The notes: generated by a model from the letters alone, not told the origin. Counted from the first letter of the stretch, positions 1,603 through 40,300 are shown. The stretch is 64,000 nt of DNA from Perkinsus chesapeaki ATCC PRA-425 (GCA_013115145.1 JAAPAO010000104.1:12262-76261), one strand, 5' to 3'. Numbers and translations: made by a program.

Positions 1603-2234
1603 TGTGTGGTTGAGAAAGATACTATATAGGTTAACATTGTCGACCATTCTTGTTACACTACCGTATTGCTACATTCTGAAGTTCAAAATTTGAACCACCC
1701 AAACTTCTCTAAAAAAGCTGCACTTTTAACTCTCCCCACGCCCCATAACGCCAGAGGCACGTATTCGCTCAGCAGGGGGAGTTCACGGTTGGTCAGCACA
1801 TGGCCAATTCTAACCCGAAACGGCTCTCCAGTTTTTTGGTATTTTCTAAATGAATCTACCTTTGAGTCCAAGATTTGCATCTTGAAACATTTAGTCCAAC
1901 TCTTTTGGTTAAAAAGTTGAATATCGAAGATCATATTTGACATATTCGGAATACGCGATATATAGAGTGCTGGCAGCACTGCGCTGCCAGAAAAGCATTA
2001 ATGCAATTCTGGCCCTGCCACGAGACAACATAGTTAGGAAAATGCAAGTGGCTCGAGTTGCGCAAGAATTCGATTCCTTTATCAAAGGCCGCTTTTACTT
2101 TAAGCTCATCCAATCGGTCCTGCAATTTTGAAGCCCAAGTACCACTTGAAGAATATCTATTCTGTAAATTCCAGTTCTTGCATTGACCTTAGTCTCTCCG
2201 CTTTCTGTTGAGTAATCTGGCATCATCTGAGTTG

Positions 2235-2260
2235 CCCCCTTTTTTTCTCTTTTCCCCGAG
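2235..2260 (+). promoter_or_regulatory. Polypyrimidine tract + AG, candidate spliced-leader trans-splice acceptor
   Basis: CCCCCTTTTTTTCTCTTTTCCCCGAG ends 17 nt upstream of ATG 2278. SL trans-splicing is established in Perkinsus and dinoflagellates; its use at this site is inference. Confidence 0.45.
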
Positions 2261-2277
2261 TTCGACACCCCTTAACC

Positions 2278-3938: not shown

Positions 3939-4080
3939 AGAAGCGAAGCAAGCGTTTTTCAAGAGGCTGGATATTATTGGTGACGATGTAGAGTTTCGTG
4001 TGGGAGTAATGAGGCGTTGTGTTGGTGAAGTTGGTAATACGCATGCGAACGGAGGCAATCATGACAAGCTTGAAGCCTCT

Positions 4081-7000
4081 ATGTCGTACGAAATACGGCC
4101 TACAGACAGGCCGCTGACGGTCGATGCGTTTGTGGATTTACAAAGGGAACTTTTGCCTTTGGAACGCGACGAGGAAATCTCGCAGACAACAGAAGTGTTG
4201 CAGACGCGGTCCAATGCGGAGCTACAGGTGACAGTGAGATCTCGATGGAAAGAGAGCGAACTTGGTCATTAGGATCGAGGAGTGGTGATACTCAAACTCC
4301 TACTGGATTCGGTCTCTACTGGACCTTACGGACGTAATGCACCACTGCCATCATACTGTGTCGTACTGGCGCCGTGCAGGCCCTCTTTTGACGTTCACGA
4401 AGCCATCTGGTCGAGGGGAGCAAAGGCCACTTCTGCCACCCAACAGGTCGGACGCAGTTCCTCTCTGAGACCCTCTAGCTAACCCACTTGATGACCTGTC
4501 TATTAGGTTCACCTCTGGAGACATAGTAGGTGTCTTCAGTGTGTCCGGACATCAAGGATTCAGTGGAGAGCCGGAAGTCAGCGGTGTGGTAATACTAACG
4601 GTAGGGTAGTTTTAATAGGAATACTAAATATTAGGAATAGGAATACCTATATTAAAATAGGAATTACTATGAATAAAATACGGAGTTTTCGTAACCTACT
4701 GCACATTTATTGGCTTCGGGCAGGCAACATGCTCTCGAGACTGGCTGAAAAAGTGCGCTCCCTAGTAATGGTAATGCTTAGTAGATATCAAACGTTAGTG
4801 TTGTGTATCATCGATGTAAGAATATCAACAAAGCTTGCCTCCAATACCGCTCCTCAAGACTGATAGTAGGCACCCTATCTTAAGACTTCCTATACAGGAT
4901 TATGATATAGTGTACAATAAGATGACAGTGCTCATGGAAACACGAACTGAAATGTGAACAGGGGTGGGGTAAGGTATTGGAGCCCGGGAGGCTCAGCCTG
5001 CTCGTCTTCTCAATATGACTGTAGTGTAACGAGGCAGCAGGCTGCTGCCAGCAGCCTTTGCTGTCGCTAGCAGCCGGTTAGGACCTTCTGATCCGGAAGT
5101 CCTCGAATTTCCGCAAATCTGAAGCTCCCCAAAAATATTTTTGAGGCAGAGACGCGTTTTAGGATATGGCTCGTAATTGTCCGAGGGCCTCTGAGTAGCC
5201 TTACGTATCTTAGGTCCACTCGGTCGGGCAGACTTCAGTGGTAGTCGTAGCAGATGACCCGGAACTTGACACTGATAATCTCAAAGTGGGAGGAGGCGCC
5301 CCAGCATACTCTTTGGCGCTTATGGGTACTAAGGATGGGTCTGCGATGGTGCCCGGGATCATTGAAACTCTTCGTTGAGTTGGTTTCGTCGCCATGAGCC
5401 TCCAATAGCGTCTATCGTATTGGGGAATTCCGGATGGTATAAATACGTCTTTGGGCTGCTCCACCCAGCGGAATGTTGTTTATCTAGCTCAGCTGTAGTA
5501 CGTCACTGTTAGCTCGTAGGGCTATCTGTTACGAGATCACTTGAACATCATCATGCATGATCTTCTCTGTATATTCCTGAGAGAAATGTAACAGAGATGA
5601 TCTCAGGAAAGCTTCAATGTTCATGAGGGGGCAACCTGTCTGTCTAGCAATATGCTGTTAATGATTATCTTGAAGCCTGGGCAGCGTGTCACACTTAGCT
5701 TAAATGTTTTTGGTGTTCTTTTTGCACTGGTGGCTGATCAGGTAGTGACGTAACCTACAAGCGGCTCAACAGTGTATTGGACAGACTGGCCAAAAGTGTA
5801 ATGAGCAGGAGTCCATACCGCTCCTTTCTCTGACACCTATTCTTCGCATCATGGTATTCTGGTCAGGTCCACAATCCCATTGTGTCATGCTGCTTCGGTG
5901 AGACGTCTATACCCTCGCTGCATCCTCGGGTCCAGGATGATATCCCACTGACCTATGGTGCTAATCTGAACGAAGTTCAGCGGCGAGCTGTGAGAGTGTG
6001 CTTGGACGCGTCCCCTTTGGCATTGGTCCATGGCCCGCCTGGGACCGGTAAGACTACTGTATTGGTATCGTATATTCTGGAGTCGATCAAAGTAGCTAGT
6101 TGCAGCGCCGGTATTTCAGTTAGTTAGCTACTTCAGATTCATCAGAAGCTACTCGTTTGTGCACCATCGAATGTAGCCGTCGACAATCTGCTGGAGCGAG
6201 TGACATCCGTTGGTGGGATCTCCAATGTGGTGCGCATCGGCCATCCGGCGAGAGTTGGGCAGGGGCTTGAAAAGTAGGGCACTGCTCTTGCTGAGGATCA
6301 CTTGCCGTGGGCTTTCCTATTTATTAGCTGGCTTACGGATGAACTTGTCAGCGGAAGTTCATGTCACCCGTTTCTATTCTCAGCGACGTAGCCTTCAGCT
6401 CATCCAAAATAGTCTGTTTTATCTTCATCTCGACGCTACTGAATGTAGACGAATGGCCTCATTGATGAAGATCTAGCCTGTGAATTGCGTACTTTGCGGC
6501 CACTCTTTTCCTTTGGGCCGTAGTTCAGCGTTCACAAAAATGATGTAAGGAGAGCACGGATGGATCTCCCCGGCCATTGGCCGTTTTCGCACATTTTCCG
6601 AAAGAGTGCCTCTTTCTGTGTTGTTCGTTGGTGGTATGCCGCTTCCCAATTTGAAGGTACACATTGGACGCCAAACTAGCTCGTAGCGATCAGCAGCAGT
6701 TGGTTGGGGACATACGGGGCGAAATCGATAAGTGCATGAAGGAGCGCTTGAAAGCCCGAGAGAAGGGAACTAGACGACGTCTGCAAGGAGAAGTTCGTGA
6801 ACTACGGAAAGAACTGAAGTATATCTCGCCTGAAGTGTCCACTGGATTATGGAAATATGGTATGCCATACCGTATTTCCATAATCCAGTATACCGGGTAT
6901 GCTGCATAGCGAAGATTACCATTACACTGTTCAATTTATGCGTGGAGGGCTCAGCCAGTCTCGTAGCAGCCTTCGCGATGCACGTGGATGATCGATACGA

Positions 7001-10000
7001 CTGAATCTACAGGCCGGCTCATGCGAGACTAGCAAATGTATGCCATAACTCAGATCTCGAGAGCGTCGAGCAGTATCAGAAGTGATTGGGCAGTCAAGTG
7101 TTGTCTTTGCTACTTGTACTGCCGCTGGCGGCCGTGCATTGGCGAGGGCGTTGGAGGATGGTGAGTCAAATGATCGATCTGTTGGCGGAGTGTGCGTAGC
7201 TGTCAAGGAGCGGTAGTTTGAATCTCGCCGTTGAGGGTCGGACAGTAGTCTGTAATTCCGGATTGCCAGTGTCGTTTCTTTAGTATACTCGGAAGGGTCA
7301 GCGAGGCTTTTTGATGTGGTTGTGATCGACGAAGCTGCTCAGGCAATAGAAGCTGCATGCTGGATTCCCCTGTTGATGGGGAAGAAAGCAGTAGGTCGAG
7401 AATATCATCCATCCGGGGAGGGTGTGGATTGTGTTTCGTGTGACATTGTAGGTGTTAGCAGGAGATCATAAACAGCTTGCCGCTACTGTGCTGAGCGAGG
7501 AAGCTGCTAAGAAGGGACTACAAGTGACGTTGTTTGGGAGGCTCATGGAGATGATGGAAGATGCGTCCAAGGAGGAGGGCCGCGAGATGCCCAGTGTGAT
7601 GCTGACTACACAGTGAGTCCTTAAAAATAGCGATACTAAAAAGCCAAGAATTCGGTGATCATATTTACGTATCTAAAAGGTGTCGGAATAACTTCCTGAG
7701 AATGTTATTCGAAAAAAACATATGTATTGGGAACACCCTGTAGTAGCTCTGAGCTACTAGCTCATGAAAAATTCCGATTTAGACTTCCAAACATCGGCTC
7801 AGTGTCAGTGTTGTCCTTTTCGCGCGGCAGAATTTTGCGGGTTCTATCACAACTCTCAAAATCACGAATCTAGCTAATGATTCATGATAATCGTCGTGTG
7901 AGCTGCAATCGCTCCCCTTGACCCGAAGTAGCCCCTAAACTTGTCTCGGGACCTGCTTAAATCACGCCGCATCTTCAACGCGCCGCGGTTACGTCAACTT
8001 TATATCAGATATCGAATGAACCAAAGCATTATGGGCTGGAGCAACTCTCAGTTCTACAGCGGGCACCTCATCGCCGATGACTCTGTGAAATCGCGAACAT
8101 TAGCAGAGCTAACACAGAAAGGTAGACCTCGAACCTCTGACGATTTCGAGCTTGCGGATCGCTCGTGCCAGTCCTGCCGCCTGCTACGATAGAGTCCCTC
8201 GGACCATGGGTGGATGACGACCTTCTCTCCAGACCACTATTGTGGATAGATACAGCGGGTATTAAACTCGGTCGGGAGTGTGTTTGTTGTCGGTGGTCTT
8301 TCGATAGGCGTTGATTGGATGCACGAGGATGAAGTCGGAGAGGAGGAGTCCCGAAGTAACAGCAGCGAGGCGACCATCGTGGTCAAGTACGTCTGGCTTC
8401 TAGCCAGTGTGGTCCGTCTTGGGAGTTCCGCGTGATTCAGGTATATAGAATACCTCCGAGCCTCTGGTATAGGGAAAAATCAGACGGCTGTGATAAGCCC
8501 TTATAATAGGCAAGTAGGAATGATCAGAGAAGCGCTGAAGAACTCTTTCAATGAGGTGATTTTCATGGGTCTGGTCTCTTCATCGTCCAAGTGTCCTTCA
8601 GGTCGACGCTTCTTTTGTATCCACGGTTGACTCGTATCAAGGGCAGGAGCAGGAAGTGGTGGTTTTGTCCCTGGTTCGGTCAAACGATGAAGGTAAGGCT
8701 ATTCTAAGAACATATGTCGTATATGTGGACTCCACATTGTGGAGTGCGCAAAAAACACTAGTGAGCTGCTCGAGTATGAAAAATTATTATTATCTTTTTC
8801 TTGCATTTGCCGTTTCGTTTTTGAATGCTATGCAGGCTTTACTAAATCGAGTAACTCGAATCGAGTTTTAATCTGGAAGAGAAGAGATCAAATCAATATA
8901 ATCCAGATCAAGTGACATTTAGTTAGGTGATTGCTCTGGGGTACTGTATATAGCCGAATATAGTAACCCGAATATATTGAGCGTTGAAATTTACTGGGTA
9001 AATTCGGAAAACGCTATAATTCAAGGAGGAGCAAGAGTTTGAACACGAAATTAATATAAAAAAAGAGGCATGTATATTTTTCGTAACGATTCAAATCGAT
9101 CACCGCTGCGTCCGGCTAGGGCGAGCGAAAAGTCACCTTGCCACTGCTACCCACCGTCCAAATTTACCAGGCAGCGCGACACGTTGGGTATTTACACAAG
9201 AGGAACTCCGGACTATATCAACTTACATGCACCAATATACCTTCCTTCACTCTGGAAGATACGCTCTACCCTACTGTCCACCGACCAGGTCAGGTAACCA
9301 CTGACCCAGGCTTCTCATCGTCTGGCTATCCATCGCCTGGATACTGGGTCGAGTTGAACAATATGACTTATACTGGGTGCCGGTAAGATACAGGCCCCTG
9401 ATGATCGTTTAGCCAGATTTGGGGACTGAACTTCAGTCACCGGAGGGCTGTAGCATTACTATTAGATTATAGCCCACAGGTGTTCTATAGGTTTCATTCC
9501 TGGGCTATTAGCCAAACCTTCATCAGACGCGGCCCACGGAGGCTTCTTCTCTCCGAGCATGGCTGAGTTAAGGCTGGCTATGCGATGAATCGTTGTCCTG
9601 TTGCAGGACTCCTCAGGAGTCACAGTGACTCCTGTATAAGTTTGCGTCTGCGTTCACGCGCTGCCGTCTTTGACTTATACCAAGGAATGAAATCTCGTTG
9701 GAGAGTCTTCGTGTCTCTAAAGCTCATTATGAGCTATATCCACCAATTTACCTAAGCTCATTTATTAGAGGTATGAGCTGCTCATACCTATTACACTTCA
9801 GTAATGCACTCTGACTCGCTCTTTGACTCATTGAACTCTGAAACCGCAGGCAGCCTCTATGGGGCAGGCTCTATACTAGAGCAGTGGTGTACTAGTAAGA
9901 TGACCTTACTAAGGTCATTAAACCCAATCAAAGACGCCTTACCCTATTCTCACTCTTCTGCCTCAAGCTGCTTTCCCAAAGCCTCCGTAGCCGCCATGGA

Positions 10001-13000
10001 ATCAACTAACTGTGGAGCACTACTGCTAGCACTGCCCACTGCATCACCACTAGTAGCAGAAGTAACAAAACCGGGAGCTGACGACGTTGTAGTCGAACGA
10101 GACTTGGGCTTCCGTGCAGTTGTAGAAGCTGCCACAGTCTGTGGCTCATCCATGCTCGTAGTCGCTGGCGGGTTTGACGTCGTACCTTTGCTGCTTGAAC
10201 TGCCACGAAGGGACTGAGTCAATGAAGTCTTAAACCGACTCTCTTCCTTTGTTGTACGACTATAAGGCGCAGCATCTTTCCTTTTCTGCAGCCTAGCTTT
10301 CTTCTGCTCAATAGCCGCCTTCGCAAAAAAGGTCATCAACTCCTCAATACCACTGCTAACAGTCGAACAAACTGAGTTGCCAGAATTGCGCGTACCAGCA
10401 TGAGGAAATAACTCACACGTGTTCGCGTAACCGCATGTGCCCCAGCCCGGCTCAGGGTTCAGCATAAGCCGTTTAGGGCCCTGAGGATCTCGTGAAATTT
10501 TAATTCCGATTAGTATTCTTACGACAAGCTGACGTGATGTATAAACTGGAGAGACCATGTCTGGTACGCAGCGGGCAAGGCCCGCAAAGCGCTAGGACGC
10601 TTTTCAAAGCTTTTCGCTAGGAGATGGTCGATTCCCCCAGCCATACTATGGCTGCCATAGCAACACAACTCTGGAAGAGATGGGAAATATACATGGCAAA
10701 ATGACACGTGACAACTCACAAACAGCGCGCAATTCCGTGAGTGTGCAGACTCTGAGCACTTGCCATTCATCTGTCGCTTTGACGTTTCATTCCTTTTGAT
10801 ATTTTTTGGCAAGAACGGATCCAAATGTACGACGGAAATGAGAGAAGAGGCACTGGAACTCTCCACACAATGGGAAATATACATGGCAGCTTTCTTCTGC
10901 TCAATAGCAGCCTTCGCAAAAAAGGTCATCAACTCCTCAATACCACTGCTAACAGCCGAACAAACTGAGTTGCCAGAATTGCGCGTACCAGCATGAGGAA
11001 ATAACTCACACGTGTTCGCGTAACCGCATGTGCCCCAGCCCGGCTCAGGGTTTAGCATAAGCCGTTTAGGGCCCTGAGGATCTCGTGAAATTTTGATTCC
11101 GATGAGTATTCTTACGACAAGCTGACGTGATGTATCAATGAAGAGGACAAATTTACCGAATTCATTTCAGTCGACCGTTTGCTTCAGTACTCGGAAGTTA
11201 GTGCGCAGTAATTGGGCAGGAAGATTTCCAGGGAGGATAAATACATCGCGACGATCACCGAACTCGAGGAACTCGGAATAGAAACTGGCGCATACTCACG
11301 GAACCATTCCTCATGGAGCACCAGCCAGGGCTCTTAGCACAGAAACGTACTTATTTATATCAGCGGTGGCTGCAGGCCTATAACCTTAGGGGGGTAGAGA
11401 GGCAAGACACTTTTTATGAGTGTCCGACTCGGATTCCAAGTCTTGGAACTACACCTTGAGATACTAGGTTTTTTGAATGATTAAGCCCGTGGCAACGGCC
11501 ACGGATGGCGGGACTGCAGTCTCTGTAATGCCTTCTGGGCACCTTGTAAGCTGCGGGAGTTGGATGGCCGGAAAGGCCTGGATGGTGAGTTTTCGAAGGT
11601 AGACCGCTAAGGCATCAATAGAGTCAAAGTCGGTGAGAGCCACCTTTGCCAGATCACGGAAAGACTTAACCGGAGTGGCGCCATATCGGCGACGGAGCTC
11701 GGCCTTGACCGTACTTAAGCGAGTCGAGGGAGAGTCAGTGGACTGGCCAAGGAGAGTGCTCACGGTGGCATAGGCCCCGTCTGTGACACTCAAGGTCAGC
11801 AGGCAGAGCGTGGCTTCAGCCGACAAACGAAGGCCAGAAGCAATGATGTTGAGCTTGTCGAGAAACTCTTCGACGTCCGTTTGACCTTTCGATGCACCAT
11901 CCCAACTGAACGCATAGCGTTTGAGGCTGCCTAGGTGTTGAGGGTCACCCGCGGACGCCACCAGGGATTGGCCGTATTTAGCCGCAGCCACCGAGGCAGT
12001 AAACTCCTGCTGGGAGACTGTGGGAACCGCAGGGGCTCCCGAGCGGGGAGGAGGGGGTCCTCGCCTAGAAGGGATCTCGAGGGAGAGTGCCTGCTTCGGC
12101 ACTGGAAAAAAGGGCGGTGGAGCCTTGGCATAACGCACCGAACTGCTCTTGGCCGCCATCTGGCGAGGGCCGGAACCGCTGGTCCCACCGGAGGGGAGGG
12201 CTCCCGCGGTGTCAACGAGCCCGGGAGGGAGCTCGTGCTGGCCATCAACCTGCGGGTCATCGCCATGAGGCGAGGGACGAGAACCGCCAGCAGGGGAGAA
12301 CATTGAACTAAACTATCAAGGGATTTCCTGGGTCTGGGCACCAGTTGGATGCCCGAACACAACAACCGGTAGGTTGCAGATAATAGCTTAGAGAACGGCT
12401 ACGAAGGAGACTGCGGAAGTGGCGTCACCGAGGCGTCATGTCACCGCGTGCGACAGGCGCGCGTCGCGGGCGTGCGATATCTGTGTGGGCCTGCCACTGC
12501 GGGTAAGCAGCTGGCGCTATGGCGTGGGTTGTTCGATAACGGTTATTCATCAGCTATGCGCGTGCGTGCAGCCTGCATAGATTGCCACTGCCTAGTTATG
12601 TCGAGTTTATCGTGTCAATAACGTCCCTCTTTGATTGAGCTTGCATGAAAATGCCCTACCGTTGAGGTTATCTCCGTTGAGAAACACTCAGAGTGGTTTG
12701 ATCGAACTGCTTCGTTAATCCGACAACAGTGACAACATTATTGTCACATCAACTTCATTCCCTCCAAAAAGATTCTCCTAGTGAACTTTGAAAGTATCAA
12801 TAATATCATCCGGATTCAAGCTTTCAAGCCTCTCACGAACAGTATTGTCTATATGAAGTTTATTCTTGAGATATAAAATGGAAAGTTCACAACTATGTTC
12901 AAAAAAATATAAATCCTGCCTGTCAGGAGCAATCTTCTCTTCTTGGGTCCGATCTCCGTTCTCTTCCACACTTTTCCATTTAGGAGAAGTTGGCTTTTTG

Positions 13001-14309: not shown

Positions 14310-14411
14310 ATGTTTCTTGCTCATCGCTGATATGTTGTCTGTTATTCACTCAAAAGGAATACGCTTAGTTGTGACGGTCTTCTTCCTTGACACCAACGGT
14401 TCTGGTTTTCT

Positions 14412-16178
14412 ATGCCATCGTTCAGTCTCGACCGGCGGCTTAAGGGGCACACACAAGTTGTGACGAGTGTGCGATATAATCATAATGGAAGGTGCTGTAT
14501 TCCATCTAGCTCTACGTGTTCATCACGTCGTGCTGTAGATACTGCATGAGTACCTCGCAAGATCGTTCTATAAGACTGTGGAACCCTTCTAGCAGCTCTT
14601 GTGAGCCTATCAAAACATATACTGGACCTCATAATAGGGATGTCAACGACTGCTGTAAGTAAGCGCCTTGTCTCTGCTATACGCTTAACAACACTTCTAT
14701 TGCTACACGCAAACAAGCCTCAATTGCTCAATCAGTTTCAGTATGTAATCCTTCATCAGGCTATGTGCCTCAGGTATGACAGACGATAATGCAAAGTTCA
14801 TCTCTGCCGGCGGTGATAAATCAGTCTTCTTATGGGATGTCGCCACGGCTAAAGTTATCAGAAGATTCGCCAGACACAAAGGACCCGTGAGTCCGTAAAT
14901 ATCTGTTCCTCATGGACCTGATCTTCGTGTATTCTGGTTGCTTGAATACGTTGCACTCAGGTTAACTGCTGCGACTTCGCTGGACAGGAGCAAAATATAT
15001 TGATAACCGGAAGCAATGATAAAACTGTGAGAGCAGCTGCTATTTGTTCATACGTTCGTGCGGCGCACTTCAACCCGTCTTTGACTGAATTAATTCACAA
15101 ACCCACGGTGTGTTTCGGTGCACTTTCACCACCCCTATCCGAAAGGTTGGAAAGGAATCATAACAACCTGTAATTTGTATTTCCAAGGTCTGTATCAAGA
15201 TTTCGATAGACTCCCTCTTGATAGACTCCCTCCTACTTCTTTTATCCCGCCTTCGTTAGATGCCCGTCCAGAGCGCGCATCTCTAGATGTCGCGTACTGT
15301 AGCTCTCTCCGTATGATGATCTACTTAGGTTATGCTGTGGGACTGGCGCGCCTTTACCAACAACCGGCCATTGCAGACATTGACAGAAGCTTATGATTCA
15401 GTTCAGGCCATAAAAGTGATAAACGAGTAAGTTTTCCGTTGAGGTCTAACGTTTCTCAAGAGCTTGAAGATGTCTAGACTTCCCAGGCGCACACACCCTT
15501 GTGGCACAAGGCTTGTGCATGATATCAGCTCCCATATTATTATTCGGCTCCTACATACGCCATAGATACGAACTCCTGACAGGGAGTGTTGACGGATGCC
15601 TAAGACGCTATGATATCCGCTACGGTCGACTTACGGTAGATGAATTTGACGGGCAGTCAATCACTTGCATTTCACCAAGTAAGAGCTTACGAAATAGTCT
15701 TACCAACTAGAATCTGTGATGCTCCAGGTTCGGACTCTCGGTATCTCTTGCTCGGCATGCTTGATAGCGGTATACGGTTATTTGAGACACAAACAAATCG
15801 CGTCATCAAGAACTACAAGGGCAAACACGTGAACCGGACATACAAAACCTACTGTACATTCGACGGGTCAGAGAATCTAGTCCTCACGGGCTCAGAGGCC
15901 GGCAGCTTGGTCTGGTATGATGTTGCAGATGATGACATAACAGGTAGGCTAAGTATGAGCACACATGCGTACCGCACGACATGCGAATGAGTTCCGCACA
16001 ATTTGGCGAATCAGGTGCCGCTATGGCGCCGAGCAACAGTGGTGCAATATTGTGCGTGCGGGCTTATGAATCCCAAGTATTGGCCACAACGCAATCTGGC
16101 GAAATACTAGTGTACCACTATGATCCTGACCAGTCCAGTACCGTTATTGGACCGGCGAAACCTAACGTTTCAAATTGA
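14412..16178 (+). CDS. WDR83: WD40-repeat protein, WDR83/MORG1-like
   Basis: Spliced exons read LKGHTQVVTSVRYNHNG, YCMSTSQDRSIRLWNP, FISAGGDKSVFLWDVATAKVIRRF, ILITGSNDKTV, VMLWDWRA..PLQTLTEA, ELLTGSVDGCLRRYDIRYG, YKGKHVN, VLTGSEAGSLVWYD. Confidence 0.8.
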
Positions 16179-16514
16179 ATCACTCTGCTTTGAGCTAGTC
16201 ATTTACTATAGACGAAAATACGTACTATAATGGCAGTGGGTTTAACCTCGATGGTTTGGAAGACCCAAAACTGTGTTTGCCGTTTTTAACCCAACACCGT
16301 TTTCATTTGTTACTCCAAATGACATCCGACTGGTGGAGTATATCGAAATTCGAAGTAACACAGTTTGTTTTTGTTCTTGTTGGCACCTCAGTTCGGCAGG
16401 TGAGCCAAAGAGCTTATTTGACATTCTCGTCGAATATGACTTTGCAAGGTTCTCGATGCAATTCTCATCGTGCTACTCCCGATCGGTTACATCATATCGC
16501 GTGTATGGTCTCGT

Positions 16515-18352
16515 ATGAGATGTCCTGCAAGTCCTCCCAGCGCCGTGTTAATCACGGGAGCCGGCGGAGAAGGGCTCGGCGCAGCGCTTGCTCTGAAGTA
16601 TGTTACCCTCCAAGTCGCGTTAGTATTCTCAAAGATACGCGTCTCCGTCAACACGGAAACTGATTCTCACTGATGTGCGTCGGGAATCGCTCGCCGCTGT
16701 GGCTGGAGCTTGTCGCGCAAAAGGTAAGCCTAACTGCCTAGTCGATCGCTTTTATCAATTCCTGAAGAATGCCCTTAGCCCTCCACCCACGAGAATTTTC
16801 GTTTGCCATCCTTCAGGCGCCATCGAAGTCATAACCGTTGAGGCTGACGTTTGCGATGCCCTAGCAATGCGAAAGCTCGCGGAGCTCCACCCCGATGTTG
16901 ATCTAGTCATCGCCAACGCAGGTGCTCATTGCTACATTGCTGAAGCATATCTGTCGCTTTTTCGACAGGTGTTGCCGCTCACACGGTCTCAGGCGCTAGT
17001 GCTGCACAACCCACACCTCCTGTGACAGAGTCTTCTGCCAAACTACTGAGCGTTAATGTTCTAGGTGTCATGAACACGGTGAGTTTCACTCTGCTCGACT
17101 GGCTAAGTCTCCTCTAATTGGTCGGCACGCCACGCAATAGTATTACAACTGGTGTAGTCTATGAGATTTAGCTAGCTATGTGTCTCTGATAATAAGCAAA
17201 CAATCCAATGCCTTTGGCCAGAAAAAATGATGTTATGGTAGAACAGCGCGAAACGGGGCGAGGAGTCATCTATTATTACTCCTCCATCCCAAATGCTATT
17301 CTGCTGGTTGCAATCCGATTATTACTACCGTGCTTCACATCTCTTAAACAGAGCTCAAATAAGCATAAACATCGGAGACCATTTCTAAAGTCACCAGACA
17401 ATCATCAAGCGAATCGCTTGAAACAATGTTGATAGACGCTAGTGACTAGAATGAAGCAAGTATAAGGCAATAGAATGACAGGTATCAACAGTACTTCTCG
17501 TGTATCTGGAACCCTCTCTCTTTCTCCGGATTTCCACTTTGGTTCAGATGGTGACTAGCACAATGCATTAGAGAGGTTGCTCTTGTGCATGTGTATTTCG
17601 GACACGGTATTGTTAAATTTGCAAGCATTGGGAATGGCGGTTACTGGCGTCTCCTGCCAAGATACTCCCTTACGTTGATCCGATGCGTCAGCGCGGTCGA
17701 GGCCATCTTGTCATAATGTCGTCGATGGGTAGGTATTTCTTCAGTCTCCGCAGTTGACTAGCATCCTCGTGTGTAGGGTCGTATCTCCCAACCGCTGCAT
17801 CTCCCGAGTATCACGCCAGTAAGGCTTGTGTGAGAGTCTACGGAGAGTCTTTGAGAGTTCTACTTCGCGGCAGTGGAGTTAATGTTACAGTTATATGCCC
17901 AGGATTCGTAAGTAACCGATGGCGTATTACTATGGTATATCCCTGAGAACACATCGACTATGTGTACCTTTTTCCTTCCATTGGTAGCCGTTACTGCTGC
18001 TTTCTAGGAATATCATCTCAAATGAATGAGTTTTGCTGGTAATTTTTCTTTTTCAGGTCAAGACTCCAATGACAGATATCGCTGCATCGCGTCGTGTTCA
18101 CCCACTACCACTTATGATGTCCGTGGCAGCTGCAGCTAACTATTGCAAGGAAGGCATCGATGCGAACATGGCAGTAGTGAACTTCCCCAATCTGGTGAGC
18201 TCTTCCTGGTGGCGAGCGAAATGATCCATTCTTAGCTCCTGTGGGTTACGGAAACGGTTATGAGTTGGCCTTCGGCAATTCGCGAGCTGATAATTCCGCG
18301 CCCTACAGGAGTTCAAGCATCAAGACTGTCTCGGATGTCAATGCAAAGATAG
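16515..18352 (+). CDS. Short-chain dehydrogenase/reductase (SDR)
   Basis: VLITGAGGEGLG Rossmann motif; VDLVIANAG; VNVLGVMN; GHLVIMSSMG; catalytic YHASK (~17808); VNVTVICPGF-VKTPMT; last exon LLWVTETVMSW..MQR* ends at 18352. Confidence 0.85.
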
Positions 18353-19277
18353 AATCGCATGCGGCCGTTCCGGATCATACGCTGACGTTGATGAACAAAG
18401 CTATTTTCTTTCTATTTTCAATTCTTGGCAGCTATGAGTTTTCTTGTTGGGTTTATGATAAACCCTTTATCTGCCCTCGTGGGGATGACAGTAGTGCGTA
18501 TTTGGAGAATATGAGCCTGTAACAGTGTTTCAGTCATTACCCGTTTCCTTGTGTTGCCCACGGGCGTTAATAGGAGGGCGTGGTACCGCTGAGCAATCGG
18601 CCCTGAACCTAAGGTGTGGCACCTTGGTAAATCGGTAAACGTATCGTGAAGATGCAAATGGAGAGTAATCACTGCTAGTAGCCCTGCAGTCGTCACATCG
18701 TTGGTTTTCGCTGTTAGCTCTGTTTGTTTCAGTTCATCTAACAAGCGCCGATAACTCAACTCGCTGCTATTACTGTGATAATGAGCCGATAAACCAATAA
18801 TAAGATAATCGGATAACACGACTCTCAATAAACTATGTATTTGACTGCAACTTAAACCCGTTGCATGGTATCGCACTATGCGTGTGAATTCCAACACTCG
18901 AAACAGATGATCGAAGGAGGAAAAAGCAGCGAGCGATCGATCGTGAACTAACGGATTGGTACATATATTTCAACAAAGACTTGAAATTGCTCGCAACCAC
19001 TGGCTAACTGATAGTCGAGCCTTCATCGTAGAATCCACGACGATGTATAAAACACACATAGCAATACTATGATTCAAACTAACGTCCCTAGTTCAAGGTA
19101 GCTGGTAGTCGGTAGGTTAAAAACTCATGACGGTAGACGGTAGGTTTCAAAAACTTTTGGTAGTTGTAGTTCAATATTGGTGGTAATATCCGTACTTGGC
19201 TCTATTGTACGTATAAGACACCGATGCTCTTAGTAGTGATTGGTTAGAAGAGTCTGGCATTAGATCTGTTGGGTCCA

Positions 19278-20378: not shown

Positions 20379-21085
20379 TATATAATTGAGTCCTCAACTT
20401 CACTGCTGAATGGTGACAGGGTTAATGAAGAACAGTCCTAATCACGTCTTACTCATGGTATCATTCGCGCAACAGACTAGACCCGCATGCATTCTGGAGC
20501 ATGTCGTGGTTGTATTCTAAGTGACACTTAGTAAGTGTTAAATTGTTCTAGCATCGGGCTAGCGCAGCTCCGTGAAAGAAATCCTACCGTCACTGCGCGG
20601 GTCGCACAGCCATATTTTTTAAGGAAAGCTATGCTATAGCACCCTGAATATCGTACTGCCATGCATTGTTCCGGCAGGATATGTTGACCCATGAGTGGCG
20701 CCCAGATTCAAGAGCTTAATTACTTCTCTCCGTTCCATTCGACGTGGGCACAGTCCTTCCAGCCTTTAGGGTTGGAACTTGTAGCGGTGCTCCACAGCCT
20801 TGCCTCTAGTGGAGACTCTCGGCATCAAGCAGACGGACGCAATCCCCCTGAAGAGGAAGGTTTTTTTGTTCTCTTCTTGCCGGCGCTGTCCCGCTGTTTC
20901 ACTCCGCGTTAGTGCCGAGCTCATCCTATGAACTACTAACAATTATCAGCAGCGCTACATCCGTAGTGTTTTGAGTGGCTACACTCTGTCTGCCATTGTG
21001 CTGCTGCGATTGCTGGCATCTCGTGAGATAAGTTGGAAGTAGATAGCTGTATAAGTTTCTCTCGGGTTGAGGCTCGCAACTTGAG

Positions 21086-21350
21086 AGTCCGATGACAGAT
21101 ATCGCTGCATCGCTTCGTGTCCACCCTCTACCATTTATAACGTCAGTGGCGGGCTGCCACCACCAGCTGCAGCTTAATATTTCAAGGGAGACATTGATGC
21201 GAGCGTGGCAGTATTGAACCTCTTCAATCTGGTGAGTTCTCCTAGGTGGCGAGCAAAAATTCTTAGCTTCTGTAGGTTACACAAACTGTTACGAGTGTTC
21301 GCGAGCTGATAATTCTACGCTTTGCAGGGGTTCAAGCGTCAAAGCTGCCC
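21086..21350 (+). pseudogene. Decayed duplicate of the last two SDR exons and their intron
   Basis: GATGACAGATATCGCTGCATCGC..CAATCTGGTGAG..TTCTTAGCT..CGCGAGCTGATAATT matches 18069-18300 but carries indels and stops, with no upstream SDR exons. Confidence 0.85.
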
Positions 21351-22445
21351 CTTATCTCAGTGTAACTGTTGCCGCTTCTTCGTTTAGCCCCTCTCAAATA
21401 GAGTGCCAACACAATTCTCCCTCCCTTGGCGATCAAAGTCCGCACGGCTTCCTGGAACCGTCGAGTTGACGGCGTCGACACAACCCGTGTCGGCGCAACA
21501 ATGTTCCCCCCGCTTCAAAGTTGGACTGCTTAGTAGTTTTTTATTTGTTCTTTCAAACGAAAATAGAATCACCTGTTTCAGCCATTCCCGATCACACACG
21601 AGAAGAAATTTCTTGTTTCTTGTTCTTTCTTGTAGAGAAGAAATTTGCTTCGAGCAATTACTTCTTTTAAATTCTTGCCAGCTATGAACTTAGCTGTTAG
21701 ACTCATCTGCTCTCGAATCGACGGGAGTCTCGAGAAGGCAACAGTTGTACGTTCCTGAAGAATATGAGCCGGCAACAGTGTTCCAGTCAACATCAGCTCC
21801 GTTTTGCCCAAGCCGTATGGGTCAGTGAGAGACTCTTGTACCTCGATAAATCTGTCAATGCCCTCGTAGTCGTAGCCCTGTTAGTTTCTGCCAGCACTTT
21901 TGCCTATTAGAGCTCGTCTAACAAGCGCCAACAGTTTCACTCGTTTGACGGCATTGCGGCGCTAACCAGTCGATAAACGGTATCCGATCGCATACTCAAT
22001 GGCCTGTGTCCGTGACTGCAACTCAAACCCTTCGTATGGTTCAGGAAGTGCCTGTACGGCCATCTCTCAACGTCCTCGCTGAGGTTACTGTATGCTTCCA
22101 AGTATTGGAGATACGAGGAAACATGCTCGGGACGGATGATCGGATGAATGGTACCAACAAACGATCGACCATGAACCAGTGGTATTGTGTGTTCCAACAA
22201 AGTGAAACATGCATAGTAATACTTTGATCCAGATTGACGTCCCTACTTCAAGATAGTTGGTAGTCGGTAGGTTAAAAACTCATGACGGTAGATGGTAGGC
22301 TTCAAAAACTTTTGGTAGTTGTAGTTCAATATTGGTGGTAATATCCGTACTTGGCTCTATTGTACGTATAAGACACCGATGCTCTTAATAGTGATTGGTT
22401 GAAAGAGTCTGGCATTAAGCAGTGACTGGCTGTCAGTTGGGTCAG

Positions 22446-24076: not shown

Positions 24077-24111
24077 AGTGTGACATAATATAGCCTATAT
24101 TATGTCACACT
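24077..24111. repeat. Perfect palindrome, 17-bp arms, 1-nt spacer
   Basis: AGTGTGACATAATATAG-C-CTATATTATGTCACACT. Confidence 0.97.
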
Positions 24112-24408
24112 CAGTGCAATGCACTGGATGTGACATGGTCCATACCAGCCGCCAGGATTATCAGCTAGCAGCTTGGCACAATAGTTGGGCATTGCCGTGA
24201 GAATTTTACTCTCGACCAAGGTGTTTATTTTGTATGGTGTTTTATTTTTTCAGGGTTTATCTTTTCTAGTTGTACTCTCGTTTGGCAGCCGGTCGTGGGC
24301 GAGGGCTCTGAATTTCAGTCTGAAAGATGGTGAGTGACTCATCGTGAGTCCAAAGTCTGACACAAGGGCCCGCAAATTGAAGTGGCCCAGGCCTTCTAAA
24401 TTAAAACC

Positions 24409-24441
24409 GTACGACGTATTAGAAGTTCTAATACGTCGTAC
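24409..24441. repeat. Perfect palindrome, 16-bp arms, 1-nt spacer
   Basis: GTACGACGTATTAGAA-G-TTCTAATACGTCGTAC. Confidence 0.97.
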
Positions 24442-24676
24442 TCTTCGGGACCTACCCGAGCATCGCCTGCACACTACAGGAGGTATTGGTTTGGCCACAG
24501 GCTCTTACTCAAGGATTTATAACGCGTGCAGACATAAACTAGCTGTTGTCTGATAAAAGAAGAGACAAGCCATAGTAGAAAATATCTTAGGAATCTTTGA
24601 GGTAAATGCTGAACACGACTTCAAAAGTGGTTGAGAATCATCTTGCGGGCACCGGATTACCCTATTCAAGTTGAAT

Positions 24677-24719
24677 CAACCCCAGAAGCAGTTGAATAAT
24701 TCAACTGCTTCTGGGGTTG
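24677..24719. repeat. Perfect palindrome, 21-bp arms, 1-nt spacer
   Basis: CAACCCCAGAAGCAGTTGAAT-A-ATTCAACTGCTTCTGGGGTTG. Confidence 0.97.
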
Positions 24720-26298
24720 CGCGCCGGACTATCTTCTGAAATTGTATGTGAGTTACGCGGCAAGTAATTGTATTGATAATACGGCGATCTCTCACGGTAT
24801 TCAATAGAGGGCGACGTGTACATGCGCGGCGCGAATTCTACGGAGTGGCACTAGAGATTGTCAATGAGTGCACTCGACGAGCCTAGTTGCCAACTAGTAG
24901 TTGAGCGTAGCTGAGTCGAGAGACTCGAGTCCCGGAAGTGATTCGCATTTTGGGAGTGATTGTGTTCTGCTACACATGCGCCTGGTTGCGTCAGTGAATT
25001 GCGTTAGAAAGAGTAGGATCGCTTGACTCTAGTAACATTTCTATTCGGTGAAACACAATGATAAAATAGAGGTATTATGCTGGACAATTAACTCACACCC
25101 ACGGTAGTAGGCGAGCTGCTCACCTTGCTGCATATCTCCTCCCGCACAGCAGGTGTTTGAAGTAATCGTTGCGTTGGTCAGTGATTAGCTGCACTTCACC
25201 GCACATTCATCACTTTACCTCTATGCTCATTGGTATATCGATATATGATGAATCGTTTGATAAAATTGATTTGTGAGGAGCTAGCGAGCTTTGTTCTATT
25301 TTACTGCCTAGCAGTAACTGCTGCGGAAGCCTCTCCATCGTTAACTGTCGGGCCTGTGCTGACGCTAAGCAGCTTTCTTTTGAGGTAGACCACCACGCAC
25401 CCTTCCCAGATGGTCACTCTATTCAGTCTCAACATGTCCTAAGCCACGTGATGATCCTCGTGTTGTCTCAGCTCGAAAGGTCCTGTTGGTACGCATATTC
25501 CAGTGAATAGCCTTATACGTAGTCTGAGGCCGTATTGCTTACCTGCACTTACGGTTTCTACCTTGTGGTTTGGGAAGAGGAGCCAGCTGTCTTCAGCCCT
25601 AGGATCTCAGGGTAGTTAGACAGGGCAGTGATCCAGGGGAGAGGCTTGTCCAACTTGGGCCAAAACACTCTCAGTGCCAGCTGTGTCGGGATCTTGCTAG
25701 TTTTAGCTAGAAGTGAGGTAGCTACCTCTGCTGCAGTTCAACGGTTGGCTCAAAACTGAGTTGTAATGCCGATAGCTCGGCGTCTAAGGCTTAGGCGCAC
25801 ATGGCGGACTCATCGAGTGGGACACCGTAGTTCTCTAACCTCTGGGTCGCCTACCCTGCCAAGCTCGCACTTATACAGCATCGTGACTAACATGATGTAG
25901 AAAGGCAGCGCACTGGTGTATGTTGAGTCATCATTGAAGAACGACTGATGCTGAACTCAATGCGCCCAGTGAACATCTGCTCCTCAAAGAGGGGGTGCCT
26001 TCGAGGATCAGTTTGACCTGAACCACACAACCCGCTTCACGAGTATGAAACAGCAGCACCGGCAGATATACCTCCGCTACCCCTCCCCCTTCTCGGTATT
26101 TATGCGTAATAGTAGTTACTTTGTCGAACATCGTGCCCACTTTACCGATGTTTTCATGACTCCACTGACCTTAGAGCTGCCTTCCGTTTTTTTGCGCCAT
26201 GTGTTGCCAGATCCCTCCATGGTGCCCGCGATCTGGCACCACAGCGCAAGCACCCGCGCTTGCAAAATTACCTCTTTTCGGTGCCAGTTCTAACCTCC

Positions 26299-34300: not shown

Positions 34301-37300
34301 ATAAATCATTGATTCCTCAAACGAAAGGCTGCAGGGGCGATTTTGATTGATGGTCAACCAATGCGGTCGTCCCTGGAGCCGGTGCCGCTGAGAGGCTTAG
34401 AAGTTATGAAACGAATGCTGAATGACATTGCGAATAGGAAGGGCAAAGAGGTAGATCGGCAGCTTTGAGAATTTCAACGATTTTGGGGTTGGTTCAGGTG
34501 GTGGATAAACTAGAGCGAATTCATCGAACGTTGGACAACAAACCTGTGTCTGAGGTTGCCGATGAAGAAGAACCGCCAGCCTCGCTCCCTGTGTACGATA
34601 TCGCTTGACTGGCTTAGGAAGCAGAAAGTGCTAGCAACTCTCCTGGAGAGTCTGTCAATATCTCGATACTATTCCACTAGCAAAACCGGCACTGATAGAC
34701 GAATACGTATGTAGCGGACTGAAAAGAACCTAAAGAGTAGCTCTACTGCCCAAATTGTAGCATGAGAGTCATTATACTACAGTAGTTTGACGTATGTTGA
34801 TTGCTTGAATCGTGCAGTAAAGCTTTGATTTAACAAGCTAAAATGTCGGCGGCGATCTTCACTCGGTTGCTTTGGAGTGTTCCTCCCCTGTCACTAATTG
34901 TAGGCTGATAGGTGACCCTCAGTTACACAAAGTATATAAAGTCTGTGAAGCAAATACAGGAAGGTCTATCGGAGTTGGAGGAGTCCAGTGCGATGGTTAC
35001 AGAAATGTACACGACACTTCGGAAGTTCGGCGCTCCGGTAAGGCGGCTGCGATGCTACTGGGGATGAGCACGAGTCATTGTGGTAGATATCGCTTGATGA
35101 GCAAATGCAACTGGATAGTATGCAGACTAGGATGGAGGAGCTGATAGAGAAGAAGTTGATGGAAGGCAGCGTGTGCATCGAGAAGATTCGCGTGGACATG
35201 ACAAAGGATTGTCTGGACAAATGCGCTACGCTGGAGGAGGAGCTGGTTAGTGGTTGAAGTGGTTCGCAGGTGGATTGATATGCTATTCAGTGTGTATTGG
35301 AGAGCTCGCTGGGAGAGGGTGTGTTTTTGAGCGATGAGCCGATAGTAGAAGGAACCCATGGAGAGGTGATGAGCGAGCTTGAGAAGATCCAAGAGAAGAT
35401 ACTAAAGGGAGAGGAGCGCGTTAATGTAAGGAGGAAAGATTTGCGGAAGCAGCTCTTGACTCGCCTTGCAGACGCTACTGCAGTCTCTGCAGCTGATGAA
35501 GGCTCAGAAGTACGATTTCAGCCAGTTGAACAAGCTGAAGTCGCGGTATGAGCAGCGGCGAGGGATATGGAACACGGTGGTGACTTGGAGGGAACTGACA
35601 GATGGCTGGCAAGGCTCAGTCACTCGTTTAGCTGGACTGAGGTTTTTAGGTTGACATCTCCTTTGAGGGAAGTTGATGTGGAGGAAATGAACAAGACAGT
35701 CAGTGGAATGTTTAAGGAGGCGTTTAAGTTGAGCAAGCAGCTGGAAGGGGATAAAGTGGTGAATAAGATGAAGGCTTTAATTGAGAATTGGAAAGGCAAT
35801 ATGTCGGTAAGAGTTACGTTATAACCCCACCACTGGGGCTGTGTCTGGCGGCTGCCCGTGCGATTGCTGCATTGGGTGGCTGGCCTTCAGGTTATTCTCG
35901 AACTTGGGAATCCTGTTATGCAACAGAGACATTGGGAGAAGATATGCCAGGCTGTGGGGCTGCCTTTAACAGGCTCCGCTGCTGTCCGTGTCACACTGCG
36001 TAGGCTTGAGCCTTGAAAGATTCCAATAAGGTCATTTCAGAGACATTGGAAAATGAGGATATCTATTCTCATCGAGAAGTTGTTGGGGAAGTATCGGCGG
36101 CAGCGAGCGGAGAGCATGCTCTCGAGAAGACCATGGAGAAGGTGGCAGGAGCCTGGGAGGGGTCGGAGAGCCTGACGAAGTGCATCACCGTCGAATGTGT
36201 TTTGGATCAGACTGCAGCTTCCCCTCATGAACCACCGTAATTCGAAGTACTTGTGGATCTTGGGTGACGTATCGGACCTCATCACGCTTCTGGAAGATCA
36301 CGCTGTAACGATTCAAACAGTGTTGGGAAGCCGGTGAGAAGGAACTAGCTCCTGGGGCTTTTTCCGGGTGTTACTAGGTTTGTCGGTGGAGTCAAAGAAC
36401 GCGTTGAAGAATGGTCGAAAAAGATTTCTACATCTTCCGACGTTCTGGATGAGTGGCTCCAGGTTGGTTGGGTTTTTCAAGTTTTCTATCCGTGCTTGTG
36501 GCTCAAATTTTTTGCAATGATAGCACTGCTTTCTCTCCCTGCCTCCCTTCTTTGGCCGTAATCGAAGGGCCCTTTGTTTTAGGTTCAGAGGAGCTGGATG
36601 TATCTCGAGAACATCTTCTCAGCAGAGGACATTCAGAGGCAGCTGCCGAGCGAGGCAGCGAAGTTCAAGTCCGTCGATAAGTTCTGGACGGAATTGTTCA
36701 AGAAAATCCGCCGATCGTTTCCGGGCGCGATGGAAGCCTTTCACATACCGAACTTGTTGGCTCAGCTCCAAGAGGCAGGGAGATGGCATCTAGAAGGAGA
36801 TGTTGAAAGTGTGTGTTTAGGCCAACGAGACTTTAGATCAAGTTCAGAAGTCACTGGAGGACTATCTTGAGACTAAGCGAGCTCTTTTCCCGAGGTTCTA
36901 TTTCCTATCTAATGACGAGCTGTTATCTATTCTGAGCCAAACGAGAAACCCACACGCAGTTCAGGTATGTTGGATATCCCATAGTTGATAGAGGAGCGAA
37001 GTGTGGTATAGAGACTAGCGTTGTTTTTCGGGTTTTCTACTTATCCGGGTTTTCGGGTTTTCTTCTTATCCGGGTTTTCGGGTTTTCTACTTATCCGGGT
37101 TTTCGGGTTTTCCATTCCTATCCAGCATTTGGATTCTTACTCCTAGAAGTTCTGCAGTTTCTACATTTTCTAGAAGTCAGATGCGATTCTCTTGGAGCAT
37201 TGAATCTCGCTCCCCGCGACCTACATCGTATCTGTTCGAGTGGAACAAGTGGTGAGGCGATTGGTACACTGTTGTCCGTACCTATGTCCCGCTGTCATCT

Positions 37301-40300
37301 GGTTCAAAGAGTGTTTGAATACCTTCTTCTTTCAGGAGCATCTATCCAAGTGCTTCGACGCTATGAATCGCGTTGTATTCGATGCCGACAAGACCAACCC
37401 GCCGGAGATAACACATTTTAGTGACATCGCCGGCGAGAAGGTAGAGACGCGTCTCCTAGATTCACGGAACATCCGTCCTGGCAGGTGCCCAACTCCGTTC
37501 CGGTTAGAGCGGAAGGAGCGGTAGAGATCTGGTTGAATCACATACTTGACCAGATGATACAAAGTTTGTACGATCTCACCAAGCGGAGCCTTGTGGAGTA
37601 TCCTGAGGATGGCAGGTCGACTCGCTGCTAGGTGTTCATCGAGGCATCATTCGTTCAAGGTACCGCCGAGACTGGCTATTCGGCGATTATCCAGCCCAGA
37701 GCGTGTTGCTTGTTGATATGATAAGCTGGACTTCCAAGTGCGAGAAGGTGCTGCCTCTTCCGTTACATTCTGTGCTGGAAATTAGCATGTAGGCCTTGGA
37801 AGTGGGGGAAGCTAAGAAGGGAGAGAATCCACTTGCGGAGTGCATCAAATACCACCAGGATCAACTGCAAGAATCGGTATGAAATCCCTGCTTTAGAGGA
37901 TATCTTTCGGTGATGCTAGGTCGCGTATGTCCGCCAGGACCTCAGTAAGCTGCAGAGGATCCTGATGGGAGCGCTCATTGTTCTTGATGTGCACAACATA
38001 ACTGTGATAGAGCAGCTCCTGGCGGCGGACTGCAGGAGTGTAGATGATTTTGATTGGTCTAAGCAGCTGAGATATTACTGGGATACTAATGTACCGCTCT
38101 AAAGTGAGGGTGGAGAGAGGGGAAGTGTCGTTGGTCAGGTTGACGACTGTATGTGCCGGCAAACCATTTCTTCCTTCAAGTAGGATGGCAATGATGACGA
38201 GTCGGGCATTAGGCTGTCAGGTATTCGTATGAGTATTTGGGGAATGGCCCGAGGCTTGTTATTACCCCGCTGACTGACAAGTGCTATATGACCCTTACAG
38301 GCGCGCTTCATCTGAACTACGGTGGAGCTCCGGCTGGTCCCGCAGGTAGGTATCGAGCTAGATAGTGGAGTCGATGAAGAAGAGGCCTTCAGCTGCAACT
38401 AGGCGCGAGGAGAGGGAAATCCTACCGCTACGAACTTCGAAATGCCGACTATTTCATTGCGTATTCCAAATGTCTCCTCCACCATAATAGGTGTAAACTC
38501 ACCGTTTGAAACAGTGCCTTTCGTATGTTAGTGATAGACTAAATTGCCCATGGAGACATGGAGATAATCGTACTCAGGCACGGGTAAAACAGAGACCACT
38601 AAAGACCTGGGTAAAGCATTGGCAGTACAGTGTGTGGTATTCAACTGCAGTGATGGACTTGATTACAAAATAATGGGAAGGTAGGTCTTGGGTAGCTGGT
38701 CTGTGTGTGAGACTCACACTATGAGTCTAATAGACTTGGTCTATAGTTCAACGTCGACGATTTCTAAGATAGACAATCCGCTTCATGACCGCTTCATTCC
38801 CTCGGGAGTGGTATAACTGCTTCATAGAGCTCCGTGATTTAATTCAGATTGTGTTCTTGTTGTTCATCTCATCGTGGATTGACTCTGGAAGTCCTGATTA
38901 ATGCTAGCAAGGCTTCTATTTCAGTGGGAAGTTCCAGCCTGCCGTTTGTCTCAGGTTCTTCTCCGGACTGGCTCAAGCCGGAGCCTGGGCATGTTTTGAC
39001 GAGTTCAACCGAATTCAGGTTAGCATTATTATGCAGCTCGATCGATATCTCTGGACAGGTTGAAGTACTCTCGGTCATCGCCCAACAGATGCTGACCATC
39101 ACTCAAGCCATCAGATCCAAGAAGGCCGTCTTCGAATTCTCCGGCCGGGAGATTCCTCTCAATCCTCGATTCGGAGTTTTCATCACAATGAATCCGGGCT
39201 ACGCAGGTAACCTGTGGCGCGTTAATTTCGTGGCGAGCGGTCTCAGGGCGAACGGAGCTTCCCGATAATCTGAAGTCTCTGTTTCGTCCAGTGGCGATGA
39301 TGGTTCCCGACTACGCTCTGATTGCCGAGATCATTCTTTATTCTGAGGGATTTGAAGCAGGATCGATGCTGGCTAGAAAGATGGTGAGATTTCGATCAGA
39401 TTAAATTGGCGCAAATTGACGATTGACGCTCATTAGCGTAACTCCATTTAGTAGAGTCCATTATTGGTCGCGGAGCGTCATTCAAGACTCAACAGATTCA
39501 AGTCAACGTATTATGCAGCGTAGATTAACAAATATCTCATTAGTACAACTCCATTATTAGCACCACAGTGTGACCTAAGGTCCAACTGTATCGCTTGGCG
39601 AGCGAGCAGCTGTCCAAACAAGATCATTACGACTTTGGAATGAGGGCGGTGAAATCTGTATTGGTGATGGCCGGGCAACTTAAGAGAAGGTAATATGGTT
39701 CCAGGCGACCAGCTTGGATAGGGTGTTGATAAGATACCCTGAGCTCAATGAAGATGTGACACTGATTCGAGCGATGCGAGATTCCAACTTGCCCAAGTTC
39801 TTAAGCGCGGATCTGCCACTCTTTATGGGGATCATAAGCGATTTGTTTCCCGGCATTAAAGTAAGCCGCGGCGGCAGAAGTGATGGTGTGACCGCCTGCT
39901 CAGGTGCCGTACGTGGACTATGGGGCGCTGCAGAAGGAAATTGAAGCGCAGCTCAGAAAGGAGCATTTGCAGGTCGTTGAAGGATACGTTGGCAAGATCA
40001 TTCAACTGCTGGAGACACAGCTTGTTCGTCACGGTAAGAACTTGACGGTTTCTGAAGGAAGTGTCGGTATGAGAATCAAGGTGTGATGGTTGTTGGTGTC
40101 ACCGCTACTGGCAAGTCTACCTGCACAACAGTCCTGTCCCGGGCGCTGTCGCAGCTGAGAGCAGACAGGTCTCCGGATGCAGCCCATCAGTTGACTAAAG
40201 TGATGGCATTGAATCCAAAGAGTATCTCGATGGAAGAGCTTTATGGGAGTTTCAACGAGAACACTGGTAGCTTTACCTTCACCGCATTCGTGAAGCCGAT

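Follow-up and report, generated by a model that had tools for sequence, protein, structure and literature searches.

One-base-spacer palindromes in Perkinsus chesapeaki are probably excision footprints of a cut-and-paste transposon

A 64,000-nucleotide stretch of contig JAAPAO010000104.1 of Perkinsus chesapeaki (GCA_013115145.1), called the window throughout, carries numerous inverted repeats whose arms are separated by exactly one base. Here we report that nearly all of these palindromes belong to a single structure of 22 bp, the scar, in which an 8-bp site t1 to t8 has become t1-7, the reverse complement of t1-8 and t2-8, a net gain of 14 bp. The scars are, with good probability, the excision footprints of a cut-and-paste transposon that duplicated 8 bp of its target on insertion and left hairpin-capped flanks on departure, and the element most likely belonged to the hAT superfamily. 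On this reading the process is of a known kind, though the form it takes is unusually uniform.

Results

Palindromes with a one-base spacer are in excess

An exhaustive scan of the 64,000 bases returned 37 perfect inverted repeats with a spacer of 1 nt and arms of at least 7 nt, nine of them with arms of at least 9 nt. In 30 dinucleotide-preserving shuffles of the window, used as the control, the corresponding means were 4.1 (maximum 7) and 0.33, so that spacer 1 is enriched nine-fold. Spacers 0 and 2-12, tallied strictly with nested matches left out, stood at the background level of the shuffles with slight excesses at 5 and 11 only; even palindromes, those with spacer 0, are thus not enriched. 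A preliminary description of the window had listed 18 sites with a one-base spacer, every one of which we recovered at its coordinates and with its arm lengths, and it had claimed an excess that the scan, binned by spacer, bears out against both the shuffles and the other spacers. Its counts by eye (about 22 with arms of at least 7 nt and 8 with arms of at least 9 nt) were too low, however, as some 15 palindromes had been missed. The palindromes are confirmed as real and highly non-random, and their arms have no sequence in common.

One structure with an 8-bp period accounts for nearly all palindromes

To describe how the palindromes overlap, we scored chains of two odd palindromes with 7-nt arms at centre-to-centre distances (d) from 3 to 12. 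At d = 7 the window holds 6 perfect chains, 15 with at most one mismatch and 27 with at most two, against 0, 0 and 0.05 in the shuffles. There was no excess at d = 6 (0, 1 and 7 chains in the window, 0, 0.1 and 2.25 in the shuffles), and no chain at all was found in the window at d = 8-12. The distance of exactly 7 nt, which corresponds to an 8-bp duplication, recurs in two further P. chesapeaki contigs (L002 and L003), a locus of P. olseni (L004) and one of P. marinus (L006); in none of these was there a chain at d = 8, and d = 6 was again without excess. The unit can be written as x-D6-y'-rc(D6)-x'-D6-y; the bases at positions 8 and 22 are complementary, and so are those at positions 15 and 1.

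Particularly, 26 of the 37 palindromes lie in canonical units (at least 12 of 14 paired positions matching the rule), 3 in weaker units and 5 in footprints with long arms or a split, whose 8-bp target is restored 8/8. Of these footprints, the one at 24393-24441 was read off the sequence, and the others came from a generalised search that required two odd centres with outer arms restoring an 8-bp direct duplication 8/8 and, between the centres, fold-backs of both flanks; the shuffles contained no such variants. About 34 of the 37 palindromes are therefore covered by one structure, and the 3 or so left over are close to the chance expectation. Footprints of the short classical type, in which 0-3 nt separate the centres, showed no enrichment. 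Altogether, some 46 of roughly 52 recognisable footprints are the single 22-bp product; their decay is graded, from 14/14 through 13/14 to 12/14, and one third of the scars are perfect.

As the scar holds two forward copies of its target, a prior insertion with an 8-bp stagger is required. The preliminary description had proposed a lineage-wide mutational process that copies flanking DNA by fold-back, a proposal that we do not retain, since the geometry demands a staggered insertion of 8 bp followed by excision, and the structures are therefore better regarded as transposon scars than as the result of general fold-back mutation. Fold-back or template-switch repair independent of any transposon, for example Pol-theta snap-back at random breaks, would yield templated inverted and direct copies of the flanks much as synthesis-dependent microhomology joining does, and one footprint does contain 33 nt of filler. 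Nevertheless, such repair does not account for one fixed 8-bp period with neighbouring periods empty or at background, and it leaves unexplained both the palindromic preference for certain target bases described below and the long-arm variants that rebuild the duplication 8/8. Templated inserts of variable length and register, which Pol-theta as the sole cause would produce, were not seen: there is a single register, and the 8-bp duplication is rebuilt in every recognisable case. We consider this explanation highly improbable.

Scars avoid long open reading frames (ORFs): those of at least 100 aa hold only 7 of 25 scars yet cover 54% of the window (p = 0.008). A location in non-coding DNA would also suit hairpins under selection for a function, such as RNA or DNA structures of introns and intergenic regions. 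This is more improbable still, given that the arms are unrelated in sequence, that the match decays continuously from 14/14 to 12/14, that the hairpins are missing from a paralogous copy, and that they keep no fixed position relative to genes.

Paralogous empty sites give the polarity of the change

In two pairs of paralogous sequences the scar stands as an insertion of 14 bp relative to an intact 8-mer. In L003, the copy at 4200-4320 reads ...GTCT-AACTAAGC-C, and the copy at 4720-4850 contains a perfect scar at 4784-4805 and is exactly 14 bp longer. In the window, tandem aspartyl-protease units align such that 18123-18130 lies opposite the scar at 21146-21167, again with 14 additional bp and with both centre bases as predicted. 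A duplicated segment in L002 (18040-18273 and 18418-18614) has the same decayed scar in both copies, at 18101 and 18479, plus a 37-bp indel. Because these scars, like the one at 10639 in the window, occur in both copies of a duplicated sequence, scars are evidently passed on by later duplications.

Scars recur in three Perkinsus species and in independent contigs

Scars are known from P. chesapeaki, P. olseni and P. marinus. We counted 14 in 20.5 kb of L002, 9 in 10 kb of L003, 3 in 21 kb of the P. olseni locus and 7 in 21 kb of the P. marinus locus, and the density in the Perkinsus loci examined is about 0.5 per kb. With a protein identity of only about 50% to the P. olseni orthologues, an alignment of non-coding DNA across species was not feasible. 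No scars were found in the dinoflagellate loci of Polarella (34 kb) and Symbiodinium (13 kb). The Symbiodinium sp. CCMP2456 locus (L008, 13206-13230) does hold one 25-bp chain with a centre distance of 8 (15/16), as a 9-bp duplication would give. This chain is a single case, rich in GC and self-complementary, and was treated as chance. At 11123-11158 of L002 there is a 36-bp chain of five arms (forward, reverse, forward, reverse, forward), which fits a second cycle of insertion and excision on the same preferred target.

The window derives from one draft assembly, which would leave room for errors of sequencing, assembly or polishing; the preliminary description had itself raised the possibility of an artefact. 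Over 4900-10346, a segment that covers ten scars, the window shows zero differences from the Logan contigs of another study, made independently (runs X2-X4), so these scars are not artefacts of assembly or polishing and exist beyond the assembly in which they had been noticed. Moreover, the same structure occurs in the assembly of P. olseni and in that of P. marinus, which is much older judging by its accession number. We thus give an artefact hardly any credence.

Rebuilt targets lean weakly towards the Hermes preference

The 46 targets that could be rebuilt have a weakly palindromic base profile: position 1 is rarely T, position 2 is T in 43%, position 4 is T in 46%, position 5 is a purine in 72%, position 7 is A in 37% and position 8 is rarely A. 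Among the 30 best scars, T occupies position 2 in 15 (p = 0.004). The rebuilt targets lean weakly to nTnnnnAn, the target preference reported for Hermes (PMC6900584), and a symmetric preference of this kind would be expected of a dimeric transposase.

Neither an element nor a hAT transposase was found in the 115 kb searched (the window, L002, L003 and L004), so our assignment to hAT is drawn from the geometry of the footprint and the target bias. The same pathway of insertion and excision could have been run by another superfamily with 8-bp duplications, namely a Mutator-like, Merlin/IS1595-like, P-like or Zisupton-like one, which we consider unlikely. P elements leave transposon-end remnants rather than flank palindromes, and this counts against a P-like source. 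The lack of a hAT gene in the DNA searched leaves some room for these families. Merlin duplications are of 8-9 bp, and ORFs related to Merlin with an intact DDE but no recognisable termini exist in P. marinus (PMC8101967); in addition, the C/DxxH motif is common to hAT, MuDR, P and Kolobok transposases (PMC3706591). Against them, no Perkinsus locus examined has a chain at distance 8, as duplicators of 9 bp of the Mutator type would leave, and both odd-centred flank palindromes and nTnnnnAn are documented for hAT (PMC5873905; PMC6900584).

Several observations weigh against excision by a hAT element. A search for 8-bp duplications next to inverted termini, under strict and relaxed settings, gave only chance-level matches in the 115 kb. 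No Pfam hAT domain was detected in 37 distinct reading frames from the same four sequences, among them frames from two scar hot spots (8.4-12.4 kb and 23.6-27.8 kb), a search that was not genome-wide. Excision itself would have to be read from its product, as no site was caught occupied; over 4900-10346 no occupied allele appeared in the contigs of two studies, although contigs hide rare variants. In the L003 pair, the first target base is A in the empty copy and T in the scar, so that one extra substitution is needed. The A at position 7, present in 11 of the 30 best scars (p = 0.13), is not significant alone. The scar rule provides no explanation for the 6 extra bases at 9607-9634, and it failed for 24077-24135 as one or two canonical events because no single 8-bp target could be rebuilt there. 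Finally, the uniformity of the outcome is unlike that in plants, yeast or rice.

Catalogue of footprints and neighbouring features

The footprints identified in the window are listed in Table 1.

Table 1. Positions of scars and related footprints in the window. Strand is '.' for every scar listed; n/14 is the number of paired positions that match the scar rule.
Feature	Coordinates	Match	Target	Remarks
Canonical scar	1674..1695	13/14		
Canonical scar	1966..1987	13/14		
Canonical scar	5034..5055	14/14	GCAGCAGC	
Canonical scar	7743..7764	14/14	GTAGCTCA	Same in independent contigs
Canonical scar	8723..8744	14/14	ATGTGGAG	Independent contigs agree
Canonical scar	8846..8867	13/14		Within contig-confirmed stretch
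Decayed scar	9424..9445	12/14		
Variant chain	9607..9634		GACTCCTG	Canonical scar plus 6 extra palindromic bases before third arm
Split footprint	9721..9789		AGCTCATA	Palindromes 9721 and 9769 rebuild target 8/8; 33 nt filler between fold-backs
Canonical scar	9895..9916	13/14		Within contig-confirmed stretch
Canonical scar	10639..10660	14/14	AGCCATAG	Also in a second, 95%-identical contig
Canonical scar	11427..11448	13/14		
Decayed scar	14514..14535	12/14		
Canonical scar	15497..15518	14/14	CCTTGTGC	
Decayed scar	17406..17427	12/14		
Canonical scar	18450..18471	13/14		
Canonical scar	20517..20538	14/14	CTAAGTGT	
Old decayed scar	21146..21167		GTGGCAGC	Intact 8-mer at 18123-18130; +14-bp insertion versus paralogue
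Decayed scar	21458..21479	12/14		Target rebuilt 8/8
Composite palindrome	24077..24135			17-nt arms and overlapping imperfect 17-nt arms; includes 12/14 scar at 24105
Decayed scar	24329..24350	12/14		Target rebuilt 8/8
Long-arm footprint	24393..24441		CTTCTAAT	Target 8/8; fold-backs left 8 nt (imperfect), right 16 nt; 16-nt-arm palindrome of the preliminary description at 24409; read off the sequence
Long-arm footprint	24663..24719		TATTCAAC	Target 8/8; fold-backs left 6 nt, right 21 nt, no filler; 21-nt-arm palindrome of the preliminary description
Canonical scar	24883..24904	13/14		
Decayed scar	25302..25323	12/14		
Decayed scar	34637..34658	12/14		Within dynein gene span, not in long ORFs
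Overlapping-scar cluster	38705..38744	13/14, 12/14, 12/14		Probably nested events
Canonical scar	41014..41035	13/14		
Decayed scar	54777..54798	12/14		
Long-arm footprint	63180..63221			Target 8/8; fold-backs 8 and 12 nt (1 mismatch)

The composite palindrome at 24077-24135 is flanked by a near-direct repeat of TGTGACAT and may reflect nested or aberrant events. Outside the window, the generalised search found a long-arm case at 5552-5578 of L003.

Around the variant chain at 9607-9634, a reading frame on the minus strand (9465-9653) has a motif like that of Tc1/mariner transposases (PIEHLW), recognised by eye, with no significant Pfam match. A repeat of about 190 bp at 10680-10890 (also 10667-10698 and 10857-10888) reaches a Logan contig depth 50-200 times that of neighbouring single-copy DNA; on account of this depth, and because contigs join the end of the repeat to its start, we take it for a high-copy tandem satellite. 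A 246-bp direct repeat stands at 10300-10545 and 10893-11138 (97-98% identical, spacing 593 bp), and a Logan contig of run X1 passes from 10542 straight to the sequence after 11138, so that the 593-bp unit is either collapsed there or absent from one allele. Exon-like pieces with SF1 helicase motifs occupy 7452-8700 on the plus strand; in the public annotation, the helicase and a WD40 protein downstream of it seem to have been joined in one 1620-aa gene product. In L002, a retroelement at 440-4272 on the minus strand has a significant reverse-transcriptase match, marginal RNase H-like matches and a weak tyrosine-recombinase match, and looks DIRS-like. When paralogous copies were sought, its protein had only one annotated relative in P. 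chesapeaki (54% identical), and an exact-protein look-up returned the same contig.

Discussion

A proposed route from insertion to scar

The preliminary description had offered hairpin opening, of the hAT or the RAG type, and iterative Pol-theta snap-back synthesis as possible sources of the palindromes. This interpretation is partly supported: its hAT option appears right in substance, as the odd centre, the 8-bp periodicity, the rebuilt duplications and the 14-bp polarity all fit Ac/Ds; the RAG-type and Pol-theta options fit poorly.

We propose that an element would insert and duplicate its 8-bp target t1..t8, and that its excision would seal each flank as a hairpin tipped by the complement of the base that adjoins the element within the duplication. 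Zhou et al. (2004) are reported to have found the Hermes nick one nucleotide inside the flanking DNA, an offset that would produce such an odd centre. Opening of the hairpins 8 nt or more from the tip would then leave a left end made of t1-7 followed by t8'..t1' and a right end made of t8'..t1' followed by t2-8. The left end would finish in t8'..t1' and the bottom strand of the right end in t1..t8, and 8 nt of annealing, fill-in and ligation would give the 7+8+7 product, while rare events would retain filler DNA or fold-backs that extend to as much as 21 nt. The annealing step would account for the one dominant product, and it suggests joining driven by microhomology rather than classical end joining, with a Pol-theta-like fill-in after annealing as a possible step. 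The geometry, the 8-bp period, the 14-bp polarity, the target bias and the occurrence in three Perkinsus species are shown directly; the family of the transposase, the position of hairpin opening and the annealing route are deduced.

Comparison with known systems

In Ac/Ds footprints, the inserted palindromes have as their centre the complement of the base adjoining the element; the duplication is of 8 bp, arms of up to 20 nt occur in yeast, and 85-100% of the joints show microhomology (PMC5873905). The Perkinsus scars share with Ac/Ds in plants, S. cerevisiae and C. albicans the odd-centred flank palindromes, the length of the duplication and the capacity for long arms. They differ in that Ac/Ds footprints are heterogeneous, mostly with arms of 0-3 nt and often with deletions, whereas one 22-bp product prevails in Perkinsus, and in that the scars are germline fossils and not experimental revertants. 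Hermes and hobo, which form the hairpin on the flanking DNA (PMC6900584), likewise have an 8-bp duplication, and it is towards their nTnnnnAn preference that the Perkinsus targets weakly lean; the bias in Perkinsus is weaker than that of Hermes (T2 43%, A7 37%), and a Hermes-like transposase or termini were not found in the DNA searched. The P nucleotides of V(D)J coding joints (RAG/Transib) resemble the scars as palindromic additions from a hairpin-capped flank opened off-centre. RAG, however, nicks exactly at the border and so gives even palindromes (spacer 0), which are not enriched in Perkinsus, and Transib duplications are of 5 bp. In rice, 8 of 94 excisions were clean, and the others had deletions averaging 18 bp and/or filler (Roffler et al., 2015; PMC4423477). 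These too are excision scars read from genome DNA, but the rice footprints need a genome comparison, while in Perkinsus, where the outcome is nearly deterministic, a single genome suffices to recognise them. A description of such scars in Perkinsus was not found in the full-text literature searched.

A more far-reaching idea, which should be approached cautiously as we find it rather doubtful, is that Perkinsus repairs hairpin-capped breaks in essentially one deterministic way, in which each hairpin is opened 8 nt or more from its tip and the ends anneal over the 8 nt of complementarity thereby generated, bypassing classical end joining. On this view each excision would leave a recognisable 22-bp mark independent of sequence, and the genomes of the three Perkinsus species would contain tens of thousands of datable scars. 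Because one third of the scars are perfect, a hAT-like transposase would still be active under this idea; it would so far be missing from the annotation and may be unusual or domesticated.

Implications

Excision footprints are usually too heterogeneous to be spotted without a comparison genome, and the excision side of transposition is in consequence almost invisible in genomics. The Perkinsus footprint is built by rule, and one sequence suffices to detect it with a false-positive rate close to zero. Excisions could in this way be counted and dated, target preference mapped without the element, and the gain of non-coding DNA gauged, at 14 bp per event and about 0.5 events per kb in these loci. 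The scars also account for a compositional oddity that could otherwise be mistaken for regulatory hairpins or assembly errors. Finally, they would give a view of how hairpin-capped breaks are processed in a little-studied alveolate parasite of oysters and clams.

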